From the sequence record ON631220.1: DNA of 64,000 nucleotides; one strand, written 5' to 3'. Shown here in pieces: positions 437 to 35,093 of this stretch (positions within the stretch are counted from its first letter, which is position 1; each line of letters starts with the position of its first letter). The translations under genes and the position numbers were made by a program. The notes beneath the pieces were generated by a model, which searched no databases, had not been told where the DNA came from, and saw only the letters and a program-made list of their open reading frames with translations.

Positions 437-2680
437 ATGAGCGTACATGCCCTAAGAGAACTGTTTAAACACAAAGGCGAAAAGAAATACGAAGTCTTCT
501 CAATGGAAGATTTCATTGGCCGCCTAGAAAGTGAAATTGGTCTAAATGACAGCGTTGTTAGTCAAGGTCGTTCCCTTGTTAGCACCATTTCACATGAAAA
601 CTTCGGTACCGTACAAGCTACCGACGTTCAAGATGCTGCTGCAATTTATAACAAAATGCAAATGCTCGTTAACGATTATGGTTTCGAACGAGTAAGTTCC
701 AGTGATCCTCAAGTACGTGCTCGTGAAGAACGTGTCCGTGAGAACCAGATCACCGCTGCTACCATGGCTGCTATTGCCTGTGCTGATGAAACTAAATATA
801 TCCGTGCACTACGTGGTATTACCAAAGCTAAAGCTTCTAATGAAGATCATGTTAAGGTTGTACAGCATCAGTTCAATGGCCCTGCTGGTGGCATTCAAGT
901 ATTCGAAAATGGTGTTGGCCTAGAGAACTATAACGAGAAGTCACAGCGTGATTTCCGTGTTGTAACTATTGGTTATAACCTAGCTGCTAGCCGTCAAGAT
1001 GAATTCGCTGAGCGTATTTATCCGACCACCGTTATCAACCCGATTGAAGGTGGTGTTGTTCAGGTTCTTCCTTACATCGCTGTAATGAAAGACGTTTACC
1101 ACGAAGTATCCGGCGTTAAGATGGATAATGAAGAAGTGAACATGGTAGAAGCCTATCGTGATCCTTCCATCCTCGACGATGAAAGCATTGCGCTAATTCC
1201 TGCCCTAGATCCGGCTGGTTCCAATGCTGACTTCTTCGTAGACCCGGCTCTTGTTCCTCCGTACACCATCAAGAACGAGCAGAACCTAACTATCACTACT
1301 GCTCCGCTAAAAGCGAACGTACGTCTTGATCTAATGGGTAACTCCAATGCTAACCTACTCATCCAGCGTGGCATGCTTGAAGTTTCTGACACCATTGATC
1401 CGGCTGGTCGTCTAAAGAACCTATTCGTTCTACTCGGCGGTAAAGTTGTTAAGTTCAAGGTTGACCGTCTACCTCGCGCTGTGTTCCAGCCCGATCTAGT
1501 TGGTGATACCCGGAACGCTGTTATCCGTTTCGATAGCGATGATCTAGTTGTTAGTGGCGATACCACTTTCATCGATGGTTCAGCTGACGGTGTTATCAAT
1601 GATCTTAAGACCGCTAAACTAAGCCTACGTCTAAGCGTTGGTTTTGGTGGTACTATCAGCCTATCCAAAGGCGATTCTAAGTTTGGTGCTACCGACACTT
1701 ACGTCGATAAAGTTCTAAACGAAGATGGTCAGGTAATGGATAATGCTGACCCGGCTGTTAAAGCTATTCTAGATCAGCTAACTGACCTAGCTGTTATCGG
1801 TTTCGAACTAGACACTCGCTTCACCAACACTAACCGTCGTCAGCGTGGTCACCTACTACAGACCCGTGCACTACAGTTCCGTCATCCGATCCCGATGCAC
1901 GCTCCTGTAACTCTACCGATGGACACCATGACCGATGAAGGTCCGGGTGAGGTTGTTAAAGCTCTAACTGTTAACACCAACATCCGTAACAGCAACAACG
2001 CTGTTAAGCGCATGCTTAACTACCTTGCTCAACTACGTGAAGTTGTACACAATGGTTACAACCGTCCGAAGTTTGGTATCATCGAAGGCGCACTATCCGC
2101 TGTAATGCGTCCGACCTATCGTTACAAAGAACTAGATCTTGAGAAAGTCATCGACACCATCAAGTCTAAAGATCGTTGGGACGACGTTTGCGCTGCGATC
2201 CTAAACTGTGTTAAAGCTGAGCTATTCCCGGCTCACCGTGATTCCAACATTGAAGCTGCCTTCCGTGTTATCTCCGGTAACCAGGATGAAACTCCGATGT
2301 ATCTCTTCTGCTCCGACAAAGAGATTGCTAACTATCTAATGACTAAAGGTGACGACCGTACTCTAGGTGCTTATCTCAAGTACGATATCGTTTCCACCAA
2401 CAACCAGCTATTCGATGGTAAGCTAGTTGTAATTCCGACCCGCGCAGTACAACAAGAAAACGACATCCTCTCCTGGGGTCAGTTCTTCTACGTATCTACT
2501 GTTATCGCTGACCTACCGATCACTCGTGGTGGTCACCAGGTTACTCGCGAAATCGCGGCCATTCCGTTCAACCTACACGTCAACAACATTCCGTTCGCAC
2601 TAGAGTTCAAGATCACTGGCTTCCAGAAAGTCATGGGCGAAACTCAGTTCAACGGTAAGCTTGCTGATCTTAAGCCGTGA
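437..2680 (+). CDS. Major capsid protein (phiKZ gp120)
   Basis: 747 aa, recognised from the N-terminus MSVHALRELFKH. Has a GLE|NY protease-type site near residue 163, strong codon bias and an AGGA SD. Confidence 0.97.
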   Translation: MSVHALRELFKHKGEKKYEVFSMEDFIGRLESEIGLNDSVVSQGRSLVSTISHENFGTVQATDVQDAAAIYNKMQMLVNDYGFERVSSSDPQVRAREERVRENQITAATMAAIACADETKYIRALRGITKAKASNEDHVKVVQHQFNGPAGGIQVFENGVGLENYNEKSQRDFRVVTIGYNLAASRQDEFAERIYPTTVINPIEGGVVQVLPYIAVMKDVYHEVSGVKMDNEEVNMVEAYRDPSILDDESIALIPALDPAGSNADFFVDPALVPPYTIKNEQNLTITTAPLKANVRLDLMGNSNANLLIQRGMLEVSDTIDPAGRLKNLFVLLGGKVVKFKVDRLPRAVFQPDLVGDTRNAVIRFDSDDLVVSGDTTFIDGSADGVINDLKTAKLSLRLSVGFGGTISLSKGDSKFGATDTYVDKVLNEDGQVMDNADPAVKAILDQLTDLAVIGFELDTRFTNTNRRQRGHLLQTRALQFRHPIPMHAPVTLPMDTMTDEGPGEVVKALTVNTNIRNSNNAVKRMLNYLAQLREVVHNGYNRPKFGIIEGALSAVMRPTYRYKELDLEKVIDTIKSKDRWDDVCAAILNCVKAELFPAHRDSNIEAAFRVISGNQDETPMYLFCSDKEIANYLMTKGDDRTLGAYLKYDIVSTNNQLFDGKLVVIPTRAVQQENDILSWGQFFYVSTVIADLPITRGGHQVTREIAAIPFNLHVNNIPFALEFKITGFQKVMGETQFNGKLADLKP

Positions 2681-2761
2681 GCTGGAAAGGGTTACCGTTA
2701 TCTAGAAAATGGGACTATCCGTTATTTGGAAGACGGTAATGCCCGGAAGTTAGAAGAGTAA
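2681..2761 (+). other. In-frame 26-codon extension after the capsid TGA (AGKGYRYLENGTIRYLEDGNARKLEE*); putative readthrough segment
   Basis: Open in the capsid frame up to TAA 2759-2761. The terminator lies after this TAA. The motif is shared with the gp143 C-terminus. Confidence 0.6.
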
Positions 2762-2764
2762 CAG

Positions 2765-2797
2765 ACATAGGCCCTCCCTTCGGGGAGGGCTTTATGT
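2765..2797 (+). terminator. Stem-loop terminator GCCCTCCC-TTCG-GGGAGGGC
   Basis: Perfect 8-bp GC stem with a TTCG loop, followed by TTTATGTTGT. Confidence 0.9.
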
Positions 2798-2799
2798 TG

Positions 2800-2835
2800 T
2801 ATTACATTAAAAAAAGTTTAAGATCTATATTACAG
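2800..2835 (+). promoter_or_regulatory. phiKZ-type early promoter (TATATTAC at 2826-2833)
   Basis: Matches the known phiKZ early motif with an upstream A-tract. 35/36 identical to 54512-54547. Confidence 0.85.
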
Positions 2836-8985: not shown

Positions 8986-9429
8986 TTAACTGCTTTCAAA
9001 TTCAAGAGTTACTGGTATAGTTGGTATCCATGACAAGTTATTAAAGTATGGATGTATCGTAACCGTATTCCCAGTAATAGGCTGCGGTTGTATCTCTTCT
9101 ATAATAAATGGAATACCGTAAACATCCCTTAATTTTTCAGCTACTTCTAAATTATCAGTATAGTCAGTTGGTTTACCTGGTACCTTTATGCCAAGACAGT
9201 ACTCTGGTAAAGAGCGTCTATTAAAGTAAATAACTGCCTCACCTTTAAAATAAAGTGAACTGGTCTTCGCTCTCATTGTTGTTTTGGCATTTGTACCAGT
9301 TGCTAAGAATGTATCAGTTCCTATGAATTCAACATCATCAACAGTTAAATCCCTAGGCCTACCATTATTATCTTTAGGTTTATTAGCCACATTCCAAGCA
9401 GCTACCAATTCAGCTCTTGTATCAGCCAT
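8986..9429 (-). CDS. Virion structural protein (gp126-like)
   Basis: 147 aa; shares a Y/F-x-R-x-(D/S)-L module with gp127, gp143 and gp158. Confidence 0.85.
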   Translation of the reverse strand: MADTRAELVAAWNVANKPKDNNGRPRDLTVDDVEFIGTDTFLATGTNAKTTMRAKTSSLYFKGEAVIYFNRRSLPEYCLGIKVPGKPTDYTDNLEVAEKLRDVYGIPFIIEEIQPQPITGNTVTIHPYFNNLSWIPTIPVTLEFESS

Positions 9430-9437
9430 TACACACC

Positions 9438-10313
<876 letters not shown>

Positions 10314-27160: not shown

Positions 27161-27407
27161 TTTGCTTCTCCCTTGTGATGTGGAAGCCCCACCTACAGCT
27201 AATGAGATCATCAATGCATTAGATAGATATAAAGCTGTTGGGGTTACTGATGAGAATGAAGCACGTTTCTTACTTATGACCGAACATTGGCTTTTACAAA
27301 CTGATGCACTTGGACTATGTAATATCCAAGTAGACAAATTGCGTGAATGGAACGAACGTCAACGTAATTTGGAGAATAGTCATGACCCTAGAGGACGTTC
27401 TGATTGA
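27045..27407 (+). CDS. Putative o-spanin lipoprotein (Rz1-like)
   Basis: Start moved to 27045 (MKLTQKK...). Signal peptide with lipobox LLNG|C, then Pro-rich VPPPVKIP and LLLPC. Confidence 0.8.
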   Translation: MKLTQKKIALISLLMLLLNGCTSTTVPPPVKIPVAIPSSLLLPCDVEAPPTANEIINALDRYKAVGVTDENEARFLLMTEHWLLQTDALGLCNIQVDKLREWNERQRNLENSHDPRGRSD

Positions 27408-27777
27408 GATCGATGGTAATCCTTTATCTTCTTCTAAAGACTATGGAAAGAAGATACGTACCTATTTGAATAGTGTATTGGAAAAGGAACAACGTATAAA
27501 TCTAAGTATAACTGGTGAGGAAGTACTTAGTCTAATTTATGCTATTACCGATTCAGATCTTCAATATAAAATTCTCAGCCGGGAAATTGCTGAAGTGAAG
27601 GCTAAAGATTCTTACCGTAATGCGGTATTGGTATTAGCTGGTGGCGTTACTCTTATTGGGGCATCAGTATCTACTATGGTAGTTTTATCTGGTGCACCTA
27701 TGTCAGAAGAAAGTGCCAATGTGTTAAAGACTATTGTGCAAGGTACCTTTGAATTAATAAAGATGCTTATGCAATAA
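27382..27777 (+). CDS. Membrane protein in the lysis region
   Basis: Start moved to ATG 27382 (GGAG SD), 131 aa, with a hydrophobic C-terminal segment. Confidence 0.7.
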   Translation: MTLEDVLIEIDGNPLSSSKDYGKKIRTYLNSVLEKEQRINLSITGEEVLSLIYAITDSDLQYKILSREIAEVKAKDSYRNAVLVLAGGVTLIGASVSTMVVLSGAPMSEESANVLKTIVQGTFELIKMLMQ

Positions 27778-27859: not shown

Positions 27860-28393
27860 ATGCAGGATATCTTTCCGTATGACATGGCATCGAGGGACGC
27901 GCTAGTAAAACTTGCGCGGGATGATTTAAAAATAAACTTCAAACCAGAAACAGTTACATTTGAAGATATGTTTTTTAGTCCAACCACGATTGAGCCTGGA
28001 CGTACATTTATTGAAATGATCGACATTACTACTGGCATTAAGTACATGTTAACTTACCGTCGGTTAGATTTTGCTGATCCACGTGCTATTGGTGAAGGAT
28101 CTATCCTTAAGATAGTTGGTACTTTAACACCTAAAGCAATTGCTGAAGAAATTAACCGTTCACGAGGTTGGAAGCTTGGACCAGATGATATTTCATTTGA
28201 TACAACACCAATCAATGCAACTACGGATATTGTTCCATACACGATAGTAGCTATGTCGAGTAGTTATGCTTACTATGGTGAATGTAATATACTAATTCAA
28301 CGTATTAATGATACGTCAGATACTATCCGACTATTAGAGAATGGTGCAGCACGTTATCTAGAAAATGGTCAACTCCGTTATCTAGAAAGTTAA
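27860..28393 (+). CDS. Virion structural protein (gp143-like) with three C-terminal R(L/Y)LE repeats
   Basis: 177 aa with a GAGGT SD; YRRLDF module; ends RLLENGAARYLENGQLRYLES. Confidence 0.85.
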   Translation: MQDIFPYDMASRDALVKLARDDLKINFKPETVTFEDMFFSPTTIEPGRTFIEMIDITTGIKYMLTYRRLDFADPRAIGEGSILKIVGTLTPKAIAEEINRSRGWKLGPDDISFDTTPINATTDIVPYTIVAMSSSYAYYGECNILIQRINDTSDTIRLLENGAARYLENGQLRYLES

Positions 28394-28415: not shown

Positions 28416-29237
<822 letters not shown>

Positions 29238-29442: not shown

Positions 29443-31812
29443 ATGGCAAATGCTACAGACAAAGGCAAGATCAGTCAACTGCCGGATCTAGCTACTCTTA
29501 ACGATAGCGAGTATATTGAATTAATTCATACCGATGCAGCTGGTCAAGTCGATAACTATAAGTTTCTGCTGTCAAAACTACAGACTGGGGCACCCGGTCT
29601 TAGTGCGTACGAGATTGCCGTTAAAAATGGTTTCCAGGGAACTGAAACCGAATGGCTTGATTCGCTCAAAGGTAAATCTTCTTATCAAATCGCAGTCGAT
29701 CTAGGTTTCGTTGGTACTGAAGAAGAGTTTATAGCATCCCTTAAAGGTGATGCTGGTAAGAGTGCATATGAAGTAGCTGTGGAAAATGGTTTCCAAGGTA
29801 CTGAACAGGAATGGTTAACATCACTGCATGCAACCATGACTGCTGAACTACTCCAGACACTCTTAAATCAACAAGGTTATACAGTTAAAGATGTACTTCG
29901 TGTAACTGGTAAGAATGGTGGATTATCATCCAACGCTGCTTTCCATAACTTTGCTTTCCTGTTTGATAAGCGTCTAAATCAAGACGACTTAACTGCTGGT
30001 GATAAAGTACCTCAGCGTATGATGGAACAAGGTCGTATGGAAGCAGAAGGTTATTCTTATCTAAAGAACGCTTCTGCACCCACTACGCAAGGCGCATTAC
30101 CCGAATTACCTGAGTCTGAAATTCGTATTTATGACAATGGTGAATTCCAGATTGGTAGTTTAACTGATTACATTGCATTCAAGAATGACGGCAATATCCG
30201 TATTGTTGAAGGCGTTGATGAAACAACCGTTGACCTTAAGAACCTTCCTAAAAATGAAGGTATTAGTGGCGGTGTATTCGTCAAAGATGTACAAGCAACT
30301 GATCCCAGTCAGAACGTAGGTAGTATTGTGCGTACCCCTGATGGACACAGCGTACAGTCATGTCTATCAACTACTAGTAATGTTCGGGTTATCGTTGATG
30401 CAATAACTGGACATTCTAGTTATGTACCTAGCGTTAAAATCAATAATGTAGATGCAGTTGTAACTCCTGGCGTTAATCCACCTATGTGGATTGCTACTGC
30501 CAATATTGACCTTGGTGCACCTACTACTGAAGGTTATGCTGATATTGTTGTAGAACACGCCGATGGGGCTAAATTTACTACTAAGGTATTAGCCGATACT
30601 CCCGCTAATATTACTAGTGCTGTATTTACTGGCGGTTATCCGTTAGGTCAAACAGAACTTAAAGAAGATGACCTTGTTGCAATTAAAGTTGTTACTGATG
30701 AAAATATAGTAGCGTACGAAATTGCTGACTTTGGTGCACTGAAAGAAAGTAGTGGTACTGTTGCACCTACTAAAGAACTAGAGGTTACTGGTCTTTACGT
30801 AGCTGATCGTGGTAATACTACTAAGGCATATGGTTTCCGTGTACGTGTTCAGAAATCAACTGGGTCATGGTCAGAATGGTTTACTTCCAGTGATGCTGGT
30901 TCCGAAGATAAAATTAACACCATGCAGTTAAATGATCTTCGCCCAGTTGTTAATATTGGTCAAGTAACTTATCCGTCTGGTCAAAGTGCTATTAAAGTAG
31001 GTGAAACTGCTACTGTTGCCAATACAGTATCTAATGCTGATAGTGTGGTTTATTCCTCACCAAATGATCAGCTCACTATAACCAGTGCAAATGAAGCAGA
31101 AATTGCTAAGGTAGTTACTTATAAGTCAGGTACTTATAACGACAGCACTAATAACCTATTAATTACTGCTAAACGTGCAGCTAATGGTAGTGTAGCTACG
31201 GCTACTGCTGTTGTAGCTATTGCAAATGCGGCACCTACTGCGACGGTTACCTACCCTGCTGCTCGCCTTCGTTCAGGCGGTAACTTTGGAACCCAAGTAC
31301 AAAGTCATGTCATTACTTTAACCTCTACTCAGAAACTAAGTGCAGCTCCGGCCATGAATGCGCCTGGCGGTAAGTGGGCTACTGAGGATTGGAAATCTGA
31401 TGCCACTGGTAAGGTATGGACACGTGCGTTACTAGTACATGACGATGATCCTAAAGGAACCTACGATTTTAACAGCGTGGTTCTAAAAGGTTTAGCTGGT
31501 GTTGAAGCTAATAGTGTAAATGGTGGTACTTACGTACTAGGTGGATTTGTATTCCGCACTCTAAGTGTAGCTGCTTGGCCTAACCGTGAAACTGATATTG
31601 GTACTGAAGTAACCAATACTGGTAAACTACGTTGCAGTAACCTATCTAAAGGTTCTACTGGTAGCTTAAACTTCACTTATAAGGCGGATGATGCAAATCA
31701 AGTTGACACCTACACCATCAAGGATGGCAATAAGTGGTATAACTGTGACTCAGCAAACGCTGTATCCAACACCACTGGACTGATGAAAATCGAACTTGAG
31801 GAAGTAGTATAA
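29443..31812 (+). CDS. Fibre/structural protein (gp145-like)
   Basis: 789 aa; N-terminal KISQLP motif, three SAY/SSY-x-(I/V)AV-x2-GF-x-GTE repeats and beta-rich domains. Confidence 0.88.
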   Translation: MANATDKGKISQLPDLATLNDSEYIELIHTDAAGQVDNYKFLLSKLQTGAPGLSAYEIAVKNGFQGTETEWLDSLKGKSSYQIAVDLGFVGTEEEFIASLKGDAGKSAYEVAVENGFQGTEQEWLTSLHATMTAELLQTLLNQQGYTVKDVLRVTGKNGGLSSNAAFHNFAFLFDKRLNQDDLTAGDKVPQRMMEQGRMEAEGYSYLKNASAPTTQGALPELPESEIRIYDNGEFQIGSLTDYIAFKNDGNIRIVEGVDETTVDLKNLPKNEGISGGVFVKDVQATDPSQNVGSIVRTPDGHSVQSCLSTTSNVRVIVDAITGHSSYVPSVKINNVDAVVTPGVNPPMWIATANIDLGAPTTEGYADIVVEHADGAKFTTKVLADTPANITSAVFTGGYPLGQTELKEDDLVAIKVVTDENIVAYEIADFGALKESSGTVAPTKELEVTGLYVADRGNTTKAYGFRVRVQKSTGSWSEWFTSSDAGSEDKINTMQLNDLRPVVNIGQVTYPSGQSAIKVGETATVANTVSNADSVVYSSPNDQLTITSANEAEIAKVVTYKSGTYNDSTNNLLITAKRAANGSVATATAVVAIANAAPTATVTYPAARLRSGGNFGTQVQSHVITLTSTQKLSAAPAMNAPGGKWATEDWKSDATGKVWTRALLVHDDDPKGTYDFNSVVLKGLAGVEANSVNGGTYVLGGFVFRTLSVAAWPNRETDIGTEVTNTGKLRCSNLSKGSTGSLNFTYKADDANQVDTYTIKDGNKWYNCDSANAVSNTTGLMKIELEEVV

Positions 31813-34800
31813 TGGCTTCTGCATTTGAAGATTATGTAAACGGGGAACTCCCCAAACGGGTATCATCAATTGATGAACCCACTTCTGTAGTTAATGGACA
31901 CATCCCGGTTTCTACCGGGGTGGGTCTTAATACCACTTTCGTTGATCCTGTTACTATACCTGGATTAAAGGGTGAAGACGGTCAGCCGGGTAAAGATGGC
32001 GACCAAGGCCCTCCTGGCCCGGTTGGTCCAGCTATCAATATTATCGCTAATGTTGATCTAGCCACATTCGAACAAGAAATTAAACCATTAGATACGCATA
32101 ATGTCGGTGATGCTTGGTTCGTTGAAGATCGGCTATGGGTATGGGAATCACCGCTAGGTAACGAAGATCCCCCTGTAAAAGGTCGTTGGGTTGAAACAGG
32201 TTCACTTCGTGGTCCAGATGGTACTGGTCTAGTTATCCGTGGTCGTTGGCCTAATAACTTAGAATTACCTAAGACTGAAAGTAATAAACCTGGAGATGCT
32301 TATTCATGGAATAATCAACTCTGGGCGTGGATGCTTATCTCAGGTAATAATCCGCCAGAGAATCCAACTATTGATGACTATGATTGGTTCCCAGTTACAC
32401 CACAGGGTGAACGTGGACCTGAGGGCCCCGAGGGTCCTCAAGGTAAAGACGGTGAAATTGGTCCTGAAGGTCCTCAGGGTGAACCAGCAATGCCATTCAC
32501 CATTAAGGATTCACTACCATCACCAGCTGATTTACCTGATCCATCTGTAGCTAAAGAATCAGAAGCATACTTAGTTACTATGGAAGCTGGCAAACCAGAA
32601 CATCTATTCATCTTTGTAAAAGGAGCGTGGTCAGACCTAGGTACTTTCCAAGGTCCTGAGGGCCCACAAGGTAAACCAGGTAATACAGGTGATCCGGGTC
32701 CCGATGGTAAACAAGGTGAACCTGGTCCACAAGGTCGTAACTTAGAAGTAGTTAAAGCAGTTGAAACTGCTGATGATCTATTAACCACTACTGGTGTAGA
32801 ACAATACCAAGGTGTTTCAGTACGTTCCACCAATACGGTTTATGTACTGACTGGCCAAGATCCGACTGTTGATATCTCATGGACAGCCATGGGTTCATTC
32901 CGTGGTCCGCAGGGCCCAGAAGGCCCACAAGGTAAAGATGGTGATCAAGGTATACCTGGTGAACCAGGGGCACAAGGTAAATCGGCTTTCCAAGTAGCAT
33001 TGGACAATGGGTTCACTGGTACTGAGGGTGAATGGTTAATCAGTCTACATGGTAAGAACGTAGTTATTACTGGTGCTGTTGCCAATGAGGCAGCCCTACC
33101 GGCAGATGCTCCTGATCAGGCAGCGTACTTCACACAAGACACATCTACCTTATTTGTTAAGATAGATGGTAATTGGGTAAATAGTGGTACACATCGAGGT
33201 CCTAAAGGTGAAGATGGCGCACCTGGTAAAGACGGTGATCAGGGTCCAGAAGGTCCCGAGGGCCCAGAAGGCCCACAAGGTCCCGCTGGTGAACCTATCC
33301 AGATCATCGCAGCGATTGACACTCCTGAAGATACCCCACCAGAGGCACTTGCTGATAACCAATGGAAAGCATATACTGTTAAGTCCACGGGCGAAGTATT
33401 TGTTAACATGGACGGTAGTCGCTGGACTAGCGTTGGTATTATGGCAGGTCCGCAAGGTAAACCGGGTGAAGGTTTAAACATCAAAGGTGTTTTAACTGAT
33501 GCTTCACAACTACCAAAGAAAGACACTGATCCTGACTTAGTAACTGGTGATTCATACTGGGTTGAAACTAATGAAGGTACAATGCTCTATACTTACCAAG
33601 GTCAGGAAATTGATGGCTATATCGGCCCAATTAATCTAAATGGTGAGCAGGGTATCCAGGGTGTCGAAGGTCCACAAGGTCCTGAAGGTAAACAAGGTGG
33701 TGGTCTATTAATTATCTACGTTGGTGATGATGCTGGTAAACCAGTAGCATCTGCTGATAACGTAGGTAAAGGTATTGCCATTCACACCAATACTGAAGGA
33801 CAAGTAGAAGTATTTGTAAGTATCGATACTGAAGGTACATTTACTTGGGAAAGCCTAGGTGTCCTAGCTATGGGTCCGCAGGGTCCTGAAGGTCCTGAGG
33901 GCAAGCAAGGTGTTCCAGGTATGCCTGGTAAAACCGGTCAGAAAGGTGAACGTGGATCCTCTTGGGTAATTCTACCTGAAGGTCAAACTGCGCCTACATC
34001 TATCGATGGTAACCGTGGTGACTGGTGTATCGACAAAACTGGCACTGTCTGGTATAAAGATGCTAACTGGGTTGTATTCTACAAACTAATGTCCGTTCCA
34101 GTTAGTGAAGTCGATCCAGAAGATGTCGATAAGAAAATGGTTCGGTACAAACTCGGCTGGACTGAACTACCTGTTGATGAAGTACCCAATGCCGAGGTTG
34201 GTGTTTTCTATGGTCGCCGTAAAGCAACCGCTGATGGGGCTGTTGAATGGACTGCTATTGAATTACCAACACCTGCCATTGATGCTGTACCTAATCCAAC
34301 TGTCAATGCACAATACGTTCGTAAAGGTATTGCAGGTGGTGAAACTGAATGGGCTACCATTACATTCCCAGAAATTCCTTCAGATGTAGTACGCGATACT
34401 GCACAAGCTACTAAGCCTCAAGGTCGTGTAGCTGGTAACTGGGTTGATGTAGCACCTCTGCAAACCGATGATACTCTGATGGGTATGCAAAATGGTGAAT
34501 GGGTAGCTGTACCAGCCGCAGTTATTGGTGAAGTACCTAGTGAAGGTGCTACTGGCACTAACTATGTACGTGAGAAAACAGCTAGTGGTTCTAAATGGAC
34601 ACCTGTAACTATTATAGTTGATCAAGCTGATGCTACTAGTGGACAACTATTCCTACGTAATGCTGCGGCTAAATCATGGACTCTATTCCAAGGTCCGAAT
34701 AATGATGTAACCGCTGATGGTGATTGGGTACGTAGCCGTACTGGTACTAATATTACTTGGAAGAAGCTAGATAAATCATTCGATGCATATAGTCTAAAAT

Positions 34801-35093
34801 CAAGTACATTCACTGGTACAGCTTTAACTCTAACACCAGCTAACCAACAGTGCTATAGGGTTCAAACTGCTGCTAACCAAACCATTACACTAGAGAATGG
34901 ACCTGTTGATCGTATGGTAACGGCTGTTCTTGTACTACTTGGTAAGGTAGCTATGCCAACACTATCTAGTGCAGTGCTACAGTGGAACAATGGTACTCCA
35001 TTAATAGTAGATGACCTAGGCGATACTAAAACAATTCTTACTCTCCTATGGGACGGTACTAATTGGGTAGTTTCCAAAGGTGCTGTTATTTAA
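31812..35093 (+). CDS. Collagen-like fibre protein (gp146-like)
   Basis: 1093 aa with many G-X-Y runs (GPEGPQG) separated by small globular modules; TAATG-coupled. Confidence 0.92.
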   Translation: MASAFEDYVNGELPKRVSSIDEPTSVVNGHIPVSTGVGLNTTFVDPVTIPGLKGEDGQPGKDGDQGPPGPVGPAINIIANVDLATFEQEIKPLDTHNVGDAWFVEDRLWVWESPLGNEDPPVKGRWVETGSLRGPDGTGLVIRGRWPNNLELPKTESNKPGDAYSWNNQLWAWMLISGNNPPENPTIDDYDWFPVTPQGERGPEGPEGPQGKDGEIGPEGPQGEPAMPFTIKDSLPSPADLPDPSVAKESEAYLVTMEAGKPEHLFIFVKGAWSDLGTFQGPEGPQGKPGNTGDPGPDGKQGEPGPQGRNLEVVKAVETADDLLTTTGVEQYQGVSVRSTNTVYVLTGQDPTVDISWTAMGSFRGPQGPEGPQGKDGDQGIPGEPGAQGKSAFQVALDNGFTGTEGEWLISLHGKNVVITGAVANEAALPADAPDQAAYFTQDTSTLFVKIDGNWVNSGTHRGPKGEDGAPGKDGDQGPEGPEGPEGPQGPAGEPIQIIAAIDTPEDTPPEALADNQWKAYTVKSTGEVFVNMDGSRWTSVGIMAGPQGKPGEGLNIKGVLTDASQLPKKDTDPDLVTGDSYWVETNEGTMLYTYQGQEIDGYIGPINLNGEQGIQGVEGPQGPEGKQGGGLLIIYVGDDAGKPVASADNVGKGIAIHTNTEGQVEVFVSIDTEGTFTWESLGVLAMGPQGPEGPEGKQGVPGMPGKTGQKGERGSSWVILPEGQTAPTSIDGNRGDWCIDKTGTVWYKDANWVVFYKLMSVPVSEVDPEDVDKKMVRYKLGWTELPVDEVPNAEVGVFYGRRKATADGAVEWTAIELPTPAIDAVPNPTVNAQYVRKGIAGGETEWATITFPEIPSDVVRDTAQATKPQGRVAGNWVDVAPLQTDDTLMGMQNGEWVAVPAAVIGEVPSEGATGTNYVREKTASGSKWTPVTIIVDQADATSGQLFLRNAAAKSWTLFQGPNNDVTADGDWVRSRTGTNITWKKLDKSFDAYSLKSSTFTGTALTLTPANQQCYRVQTAANQTITLENGPVDRMVTAVLVLLGKVAMPTLSSAVLQWNNGTPLIVDDLGDTKTILTLLWDGTNWVVSKGAVI

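Follow-up and report, generated by a model that had tools for sequence, protein, structure and literature searches.

Why should a small protein encoded beside the endolysin gene of a jumbo phage end in the same peptide that follows the stop codon of the major capsid gene? The question is raised by a stretch of 64,000 nucleotides of sequence record ON631220.1. In the two stretches compared, of 2,501 and 601 bases, its identity is 100% to Pseudomonas phage OMKO1 and 98.8-99.5% to phiKZ; "the window" below means the whole stretch of 64,000 nucleotides. Since the window matches approximately 117.8-181.8 kb of phiKZ, the phiKZ gene names (gp120 for the major capsid protein, and gp143 to gp146) are valid for it and are used here. 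Among nucleus-forming jumbo phages phiKZ serves as the model, and some of its relatives, OMKO1 for one, are in therapeutic use; the new structures of the whole virion assign no position to the long collagen-like fibre of gp145 and gp146, and the annotations of gp143 conflict. Our analysis suggests that the peptide, three repeats found at the end of gp143 and again after the TGA of gp120, is a portable docking tag for fibres whose N-terminus carries a KISxL-type domain, displayed on gp143 and, by readthrough, on a few capsid subunits. This reading is built from sequence comparisons, and we put its probability a little under one half (approximately 0.47).

Positions 28325-28393 hold the last 22 codons of gp143 and its TAA stop, and read I-RLLENG-AA-RYLENG-QL-RYLES-stop, that is, three copies of the unit R-x-L-E-(D/N)-G-x-x. 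Downstream of the capsid gene, whose product matches the gp120 of PDB entry 8y6v across residues 1-747, positions 2681-2758 continue in frame with RYLENG-TI-RYLEDG-NA-RKLEE, followed by a TAA at 2759-2761. The period is eight residues at both loci. The initial annotation had noticed that the two share repeat and spacing, and the translations bear this out, as does BLASTP, which aligns the 26-residue capsid extension to residues 157-177 of the 177 residues of gp143 (E = 1e-6). At the DNA level, 17 bases are identical between the two loci. A degenerate DNA pattern spanning two repeats and the start of the third gave four matches in the window, all of them in gp143 or the capsid extension, and none in 100 dinucleotide shuffles of the window; in all six frames of the whole 280-kb phiKZ genome, the double repeat is likewise confined to these two loci.

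The peptide is a conserved module in both of its settings. All 54 clusters of the gp143 family, as well as 21 IMG/VR loci, end in three repeats, and three arginines and two glutamates (R157, E160, R165, E168 and R173) are invariant in the 53 family members that were aligned. To follow the capsid copy, we compared the 3' ends of capsid genes from five cultured genera (PS119XW, Phabio, 201phi2-1, Psa21 and PhiPA3) and from 26 IMG/VR loci, with Noxifer represented by a Noxifer-like 269-kb contig (L036). The five genera and 20 of the 26 IMG/VR relatives have a TGA followed by 24-30 open in-frame codons that hold the repeats, in a reading frame that closes a few bases 5' of a terminator. The 19 distinct extension sequences have no in-frame stop, whereas their two remaining frames contain 30 and 25; their variability is highest at the third codon position (0.52, versus 0.41 and 0.39 at the others), the pairwise ratio of nonsynonymous to synonymous substitution (dN/dS) is approximately 0.47, and the extension is conserved as protein across genera that share approximately 72% DNA identity.

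The choice of stop codon also tracks the extension. TGA closes the capsid gene in 23 of 23 extension-bearing lineages, a count that takes in Ralstonia phage RP12, whose 15 codons hold no recognisable module, and TAA closes it in all 11 that have no recognisable extension, namely six IMG/VR relatives and the cultured chimalliviruses Xoo-sp14, DT01, Ea35-70, FBKp24 and Phobos. For this split (23:0 against 0:11) Fisher's test gives P = 3.5e-9, a value uncorrected for phylogeny and for lineages that are not independent. Among the long open reading frames (ORFs) of phiKZ, just 26 of 136 (19%) end in TGA. We saw no conserved start codon within the extension in the window and the five cultured genera, phiKZ has no suppressor tRNA, and Rfam returned no family near threshold for the capsid-extension region, nor any known recoding RNA element (e.g., selenocysteine). 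From the open frame, its codon-position pattern and the stop-codon choice, we consider it likely that low-level readthrough of the TGA yields an extended minor capsid subunit.

In the published structures, gp120 is modelled to residue 747, and the capsid protein's C-terminal arms form a six-helix bundle at each hexon centre, while those of the pentons touch the exterior protein gp244. Because the arms of gp120 bundle there, the extension would begin at the hexon centre, and we infer that it points outward from the capsid. What other lineages carry at the same place varies. In a phiKZ relative on a 13-kb IMG/VR contig (L037, 2203-2814), the TGA of the capsid gene is followed by 203 in-frame codons with a Big_2 immunoglobulin-like (Ig-like) domain (E = 4e-9), and Ig-like domains are among the pieces by which phages are known to extend their structural proteins through recoding. 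Capsid genes that end in TAA without an extension (L038-L041, L043, L044, L068, L069, L076 and L079) mostly encode Thr/Gly/Asp-rich low-complexity C-termini on every subunit, L043 being an exception.

What kind of protein carries the other copy? The gp143 gene region is 100% identical to OMKO1 and 98.8% identical to phiKZ PHIKZ143, and a match to phrog_2935, "virion structural protein", spans the whole of its product. Against the Pfam family DUF7941 (PF25613) it scores 18.6 bits over amino acids (aa) 64-147, a weak match for which the curated cut-off is 27, and precomputed PF25613 matches are present on 17 of the 54 clusters homologous to gp143. The alignment ends at profile position 152 and leaves the tail unaligned, so that gp143 lacks a canonical linker, the segment that follows the N-domain in this family. 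Sequence searches with gp143 returned no solved relative. Its AlphaFold2 model (predicted local distance difference test, pLDDT, of 89) has a sole significant PDB match, a 150-residue chain of the outer peripheral baseplate of phiKZ (9xqd; E = 2.6e-6, template-modelling (TM) scores of 0.59 and 0.69), which from the text of a 2026 preprint on phage Goslar appears to be gp127. As modelled, gp143 shares the N-terminal globular fold of a solved DUF7941 member. The tail itself is predicted at a pLDDT of 70-81 with a strictly periodic pattern of beta bridges. The same preprint lists gp126, gp127 and gp143 as DUF7941 proteins; the literature locates gp126 and gp127, which pass the curated PF25613 score as do Goslar gp22 and gp23, at the periphery of the baseplate.

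The published roles of gp143 are of two kinds. Virion mass spectrometry detected its homologue in 201phi2-1. A 2026 paper describes gp143 as a holin-specific lysis regulator from plasmid co-expression, in which it makes the wild-type holin trigger earlier and prevents a truncated holin from acting, and models the interaction through the first globular domain. In published transposon-insertion sequencing (TnSeq), gp143 is dispensable, while gp142, gp144, gp145 and gp146 are without insertions. The lysis-timing effect is neither explained nor contradicted by fibre docking or by the DUF7941 reading discussed below. Nor does the sequence hold anything that speaks against the published role, in which triggering is altered through the holin's cytoplasmic N-domain.

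The candidate partner lies two genes downstream, with gp144 in between. As had been pointed out, the N-terminus of gp145 carries KISQLP, at residues 9-14; fibre-type repeats occupy aa 47-136. Its neighbour gp146 matches Pfam Collagen in six stretches (E = 7e-25), has no KISxL-type N-terminus and, being collagen-like, is expected to be trimeric. Since the homologues of the two are fused in 201phi2-1 gp230 and Phabio gp218, gp145 and gp146 make up one fibre, gp146 being its distal half. The place given to gp146 in the initial proposal needs revising accordingly. RefSeq and PHROGs label gp145 "tail sheath", which is probably a propagated misannotation: the actual sheath is gp29, and gp145 has the fibre-type repeats and the fusion just described. 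We did not use the "structural head protein" label on gp145 and gp146 in the phiKZ record as evidence; the gp29 sheath carries it too. A KISxL profile, built from the N-termini of gp145 homologues and iterated on ORFs of tag-carrying loci, matched 25 ORFs; on the whole phiKZ genome its sole match is gp145. Sequence searches with gp145 and with this profile found no solved relative, nor did we find by such searches any solved structure with the tag or the KISxL domain.

Around gp143 itself, 19 of 21 loci have one or two KISxL fibre genes 0.6-1.3 kb downstream, just after the endolysin, and the order gp143-endolysin-fibre is kept in nine genera. The capsid gene is 27 kb from gp145. One relative with a TAA capsid gene (L080/L081, 10001-13885) has a tagged gp143, behind which come a DUF1353 gene, then the endolysin and then two fibre genes of the KISxL type.

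The tag also occurs outside the jumbo phages. An exact scan of IMG/VR for the double repeat returned 57 loci, most of them outside the jumbo phages, with approximately one expected by chance as estimated from base frequencies; 11 are chimalliviruses, and the rest are contigs of 3-134 kb. The 44 carrier ORFs of at least 50 aa place the tag within 20-23 residues of the stop in 36 cases and within 26-34 residues of it in three more, and at the N-terminal end in four, where it starts at position 3, 4, 4 or 18. Carriers include siphophage tail-tube proteins (PF06199), large "tail proteins" (phrog_1101 and phrog_376) and several families of unknown function. Many further matches in GC-rich bacterial genomes were discounted as chance, wrong-frame or low-complexity sequence. 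Downstream of the IMG/VR carriers the fibre domain recurs: a KISxL-type ORF starts directly after the carrier stop in 13 of the 32 C-terminal carrier loci with enough downstream sequence, among them 8 of 17 carrier families and two mini-carriers, making at least 10 independent families, compared with a background of 2.4% of ORFs (binomial P ~2e-13). The co-occurrence of such repeats with KIS(E/Q)LP fibre N-termini, which the initial annotation had suggested, is borne out by these counts. N-terminal carriers have a fibre-type gene directly upstream (L085, L088, L104 and L105), and pairs of carrier and KISxL gene recur in bacterial genome contigs (L139, L150 and L152).

Three observations on these carriers deserve mention in their own right. 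In the siphophage PF06199 tail-tube family (L090, L091, L101, L107-L109, L118, L120, L125, L134, L136 and L155), the tag sits on the C-terminus of every subunit, which suggests tails studded with attachment sites. A set of mini-proteins of 47-78 residues (L083, L111, L115, L119 and L133) consists of a short N-terminal segment and the tag, belongs to no PHROG or Pfam family, and is encoded directly upstream of fibre genes or within 0.5 kb of them. At L088 (8866-10110), a fibre-type ORF and an ORF that starts with the tag lie in one frame with a single TAG between them, representing either another recoding candidate or a TAG-reassigning phage.

On these grounds we favour a mechanism in which the three-repeat peptide would act as a portable terminal docking tag, grafted onto whichever virion protein is meant to hold a fibre. 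The tag would probably fold as a small three-stranded hairpin meander, and its likeliest partner is the KISxL-type N-terminal domain of a trimeric fibre, here gp145 continued by the collagen-like gp146, so that the three repeats may serve the three fibre chains. Two routes of display are envisaged: every copy of gp143, which would be a small DUF7941 adaptor protein, and a minority of capsid subunits, to which TGA readthrough would add 26 residues at the hexon centre. Fibres borne on the head would follow from the second route. Of the fibre-docking idea as first put forward, the part that stands is the link to the gp145-type N-domain, which gene neighbourhood partly supports; the part to be revised concerns gp146, the distal half of the gp145 fibre. 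More tentatively, and with less confidence than we place in the tag itself, tailed phages may share a plug-and-socket system in which a single-chain tag on a capsid, tube, tail or mini-adaptor protein holds a trimeric fibre N-domain, phiKZ-type capsids being tagged solely through programmed UGA readthrough.

Goslar offers an instructive comparison. Its capsid gene, approximately 26% identical to gp120, also has a TGA stop, behind which the frame stays open for 28 codons (L067, 1571-1660) before a terminator, and the extension has nothing in common with the phiKZ tag. What it resembles is the C-terminal tail of Goslar gp23 (L070, 1863-2405; BLASTP to residues 158-176 of 180, E = 4e-6), a DUF7941 protein whose gene adjoins the endolysin as that of gp143 does, and which is estimated at ~2,140 copies per virion. 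As the Goslar and phiKZ extensions each match their own gp23 or gp143 tail, the piece after the stop copies that tail, whatever its type, in these two chimalliviruses, which are only very distantly related. The tails differ in that the one of gp23 lies inside the DUF7941 profile (aligned to position 174) as a canonical linker, and that of gp143 lies outside it. The preprint proposes filaments built head to tail, the segment that follows one N-domain docking on the protomer next in line; it shows filaments of gp22 and puts DUF7941 proteins at the baseplate periphery, and a capsid anchor is not proposed there. Relatives of Goslar in IMG/VR were considered for a co-variation test and set aside as uninformative, being 94-100% identical at the protein level. 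In RP12, the capsid TGA and its 15 in-frame codons (L077, ~1600-1650) include a D-G-F triplet, as in the Goslar extension and the gp23 tail; tblastn with Goslar gp23 found no partner protein in this phage.

Several points weigh against fibre docking. The Goslar extension copies a canonical DUF7941 linker that is predicted to dock on DUF7941 N-domains rather than on fibres, and the 31 kb of Goslar that we examined yielded no KISxL protein. Across 14 genomes of the phiKZ clade, the capsid extension does not co-vary with the gp143 tail of its own genome (same-genome mean score of 46.7, cross-genome mean score of 47.9; permutation P = 0.77). In one relative (P0051 and L039, on the same 131,438-bp contig) gp143 has its tail and the capsid gene ends in TAA without an extension, meaning that, of the two copies of the tag, the one on gp143 is the older or the more widespread. 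Eleven tail-tube carriers have no fibre gene within the available sequence. By TnSeq, gp143 is dispensable and gp145 and gp146 are not, and plasmid-expressed gp143 alters holin timing. No head fibres are visible in the published maps of the capsid (8Y6V) and of the whole virion, in which neither gp143, gp145 nor gp146 is placed; rare, flexible fibres would be lost by averaging in such maps. Finally, binding of the tag to fibres, translation of the extension and the head fibres themselves are all deduced from sequence.

Of the rival explanations, the most serious is that the tag is the "tail" of a DUF7941 head-to-tail assembly, in which case the capsid extension would anchor DUF7941 protomers or filaments on the hexons, not gp145 fibres. 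The fold of gp143 speaks for it, as do the docking segment and the gp22 filaments of the Goslar preprint, and Goslar itself, with its capsid TGA and 28 codons matching the tail of gp23, an abundant DUF7941 protein encoded beside the endolysin, that tail falling inside the family profile. We nevertheless hold this main rival to be unlikely, as the linker portion of the profile gives no alignment with the gp143 tail, the tag sits on unrelated proteins in many phages without DUF7941, a family reported to be restricted to chimalliviruses, and the adjacency to KISxL fibres is left unexplained. The two readings are compatible, and a common rule may cover both, namely that the capsid copies the attachment peptide of gp143 or gp23. 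Were the tag instead to need no separate partner, the repeats or chains would associate with one another into a small beta structure that stabilises or oligomerises the carrier, or forms a short spike or cement. The ordered tail of the AlphaFold2 model, periodic without any partner, is consistent with this, as is a tag that is always terminal and always in three copies; self-association appears improbable in view of how rarely extended capsid subunits would be adjacent at low readthrough, and of the mini-proteins, which have little beyond the tag, directly precede fibres and look like adaptors rather than stabilisers.

A further possibility would confine gp143 to the cytoplasm as a holin regulator whose tail serves lysis timing, the capsid copy having no virion role or at most coupling capsid production to lysis. 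The co-expression effects on wild-type and truncated holin and the position of this non-essential gene within the lysis cassette fit such a role, and we judge it quite improbable as the whole account: mass spectrometry finds homologues of gp143 in virions, the interaction as published is modelled through the first globular domain and not through the tail, and the tag occurs on tail-tube and tail proteins of phages with unrelated lysis genes. Least credible to us is an untranslated extension, its likeness to gp143 resulting from DNA duplication or from an RNA-level element between stop codon and terminator. Apart from the 17 identical bases, this could draw on the extension RNA, which folds somewhat better than shuffled sequence (mean z = -1.7), with Arg codons of one repeat pairing with the Asp-Gly codons of the next; the hairpins shift between genera, and the folding could be a by-product of the repeats or an aid to readthrough. 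We rejected a DNA- or RNA-level element as the main explanation given that the frame is open in 19 of 19 distinct sequences and the other frames closed, that conservation across genera is at the protein level, and that Rfam yields no match. The tracking of TGA versus TAA with the extension, and the different in-frame cargo elsewhere (the Big_2 domain of L037 and Goslar's gp23-like tail), point the same way. The docking tag for KISxL fibres is the reading we retain from this comparison.

Table 1. Features of the window discussed in the text
Feature	Position	Strand	Basis and remarks
Major capsid protein gene gp120	437..2680	+	ORF, 747 aa; TGA stop at 2678-2680
Post-stop extension	2681..2761	+	Candidate TGA readthrough product; 26 codons with three-repeat tag, then TAA
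Intrinsic-terminator hairpin	2769..2796	+	Terminator scan; 10-bp stem at 2769-2792; TATG immediately after
gp126 (DUF7941, without tag)	8986-9429	-	ORF; PF25613 E = 4e-9
gp127 (DUF7941, without tag)	9438-10310	-	ORF; PF25613 E = 4.5e-28
gp142	27382..27777	+	Coordinates via phiKZ annotation offset; holin and gp143 partner in lysis timing per literature
gp143 gene	27860..28393	+	ORF, 177 aa; DUF7941-type N-terminal globular domain at aa 1-150, then tag
gp143 tag	28328..28390	+	Translation; three 8-residue repeats, aa 157-177, extreme C-terminus
gp144 endolysin (transglycosylase)	28455..29237	+	Between gp143 and gp145
gp145, proximal half of fibre	29443..31812	+	ORF; N-terminal domain at aa ~6-50 (bases 29458-29592) with KISQLP at residues 9-14
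gp146, distal half of fibre, collagen-like	31812..35093	+	ORF; start overlaps gp145 stop

Two of the neighbouring features in Table 1 call for comment. According to a published structural atlas, the endolysin gp144 also serves as a neck "wedge" in the virion. The hairpin behind the capsid extension marks the end of the capsid transcript, and a terminator with TATG lies directly 3' of the extension in every genus examined, Goslar included. The terminator-TATG cassette (window 2764-2835) is repeated at 13 or more other intergenic sites of phiKZ and probably represents the fusion of a terminator with a late-promoter element of the phage. Further places that BLAST reported for the capsid 3' region were rejected as additional copies of the tag, since they represent this repeated cassette.

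How does the proposed system compare with those already described? In phage Qbeta, the coat gene ends in a leaky UGA, and the small fraction of ribosomes that continue produce A1, a C-terminally extended minor capsid subunit carried on the particle. The arrangement described here is alike in having a capsid gene with a UGA stop and a candidate in-frame extension. It differs in that A1 belongs to a small RNA phage and adds almost 200 residues, folded as a domain and required for infection, whereas here the capsid, of T=27, belongs to a double-stranded DNA (dsDNA) jumbo phage and the candidate addition is a tag of 26 residues; moreover, its sequence is common to a second virion protein, gp143. 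The minor capsid protein 10B of T7 and the frameshifted Ig-like additions provide a second parallel, in that the candidate recoding here, like theirs, would come at the end of a major structural gene and give a sub-stoichiometric, surface-exposed C-terminal addition, and the Big_2 domain of L037 stands at this very position. Those cases rely on frameshifting and add domains with weak, general binding; here we propose stop-codon readthrough and a short tag matched to a dedicated putative partner.

The DUF7941 filaments (Goslar gp22 and gp23; phiKZ gp126 and gp127) resemble the gp143 system in that gp143 is a virion protein with the same N-terminal fold, and differ in that its canonical linker is replaced by a tag also found outside the family. 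As with the N-terminal anchor domains of tail fibres and tailspikes in their adaptors, or the joint between adenovirus fibre and penton base, a short conserved terminal element would join a trimeric fibre to a body of different symmetry; unlike in those anchors, the body-side element would be a single-chain peptide of three repeats, portable among capsid, tube, tail and mini-adaptor proteins. Capsid fibres are present on flagellotropic phages (e.g., 7-7-1, which the Goslar preprint cites), and the first contact of phiKZ-type phages is believed to be with the flagellum. Head fibres would, as in 7-7-1, give a large capture radius; for phiKZ this is our extrapolation, no head fibres having been seen. 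Readthrough or frameshift extensions of capsid proteins (Qbeta A1, T7 10B, Ig-like additions) and modular fibre anchors are thus already known. What appears to be new is the proposed conserved readthrough of the capsid gene in the phiKZ group, the copying of the gp143 or gp23 tail, and the pairing of tag and fibre domain across phages: a keyword search of approximately 8.4 million papers, which is not proof of absence, found none of the three, and one on the motif strings of the tag returned nothing relevant.

If these interpretations are correct, the capsid gene of the phiKZ group would be a dsDNA-phage example of programmed readthrough of a stop codon, and a conserved one, and the extension would supply a concrete candidate site for the missing gp145/gp146 fibre. 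More generally, a short portable tag and its partner domain would join fibres to virion bodies across many unrelated phages, and the pair would help to annotate fibre-attachment proteins and to understand how receptor-binding modules are exchanged. Should the wider plug-and-socket scheme hold as well, the codons after the capsid TGA of chimalliviruses would be a slot for whichever gp143 or gp23 attachment peptide is in use, and in phiKZ-type phages a tunable few per cent of hexons would bear long fibres of the collagen-like kind, which might serve to make the first contact with a flagellum or with the cell surface.

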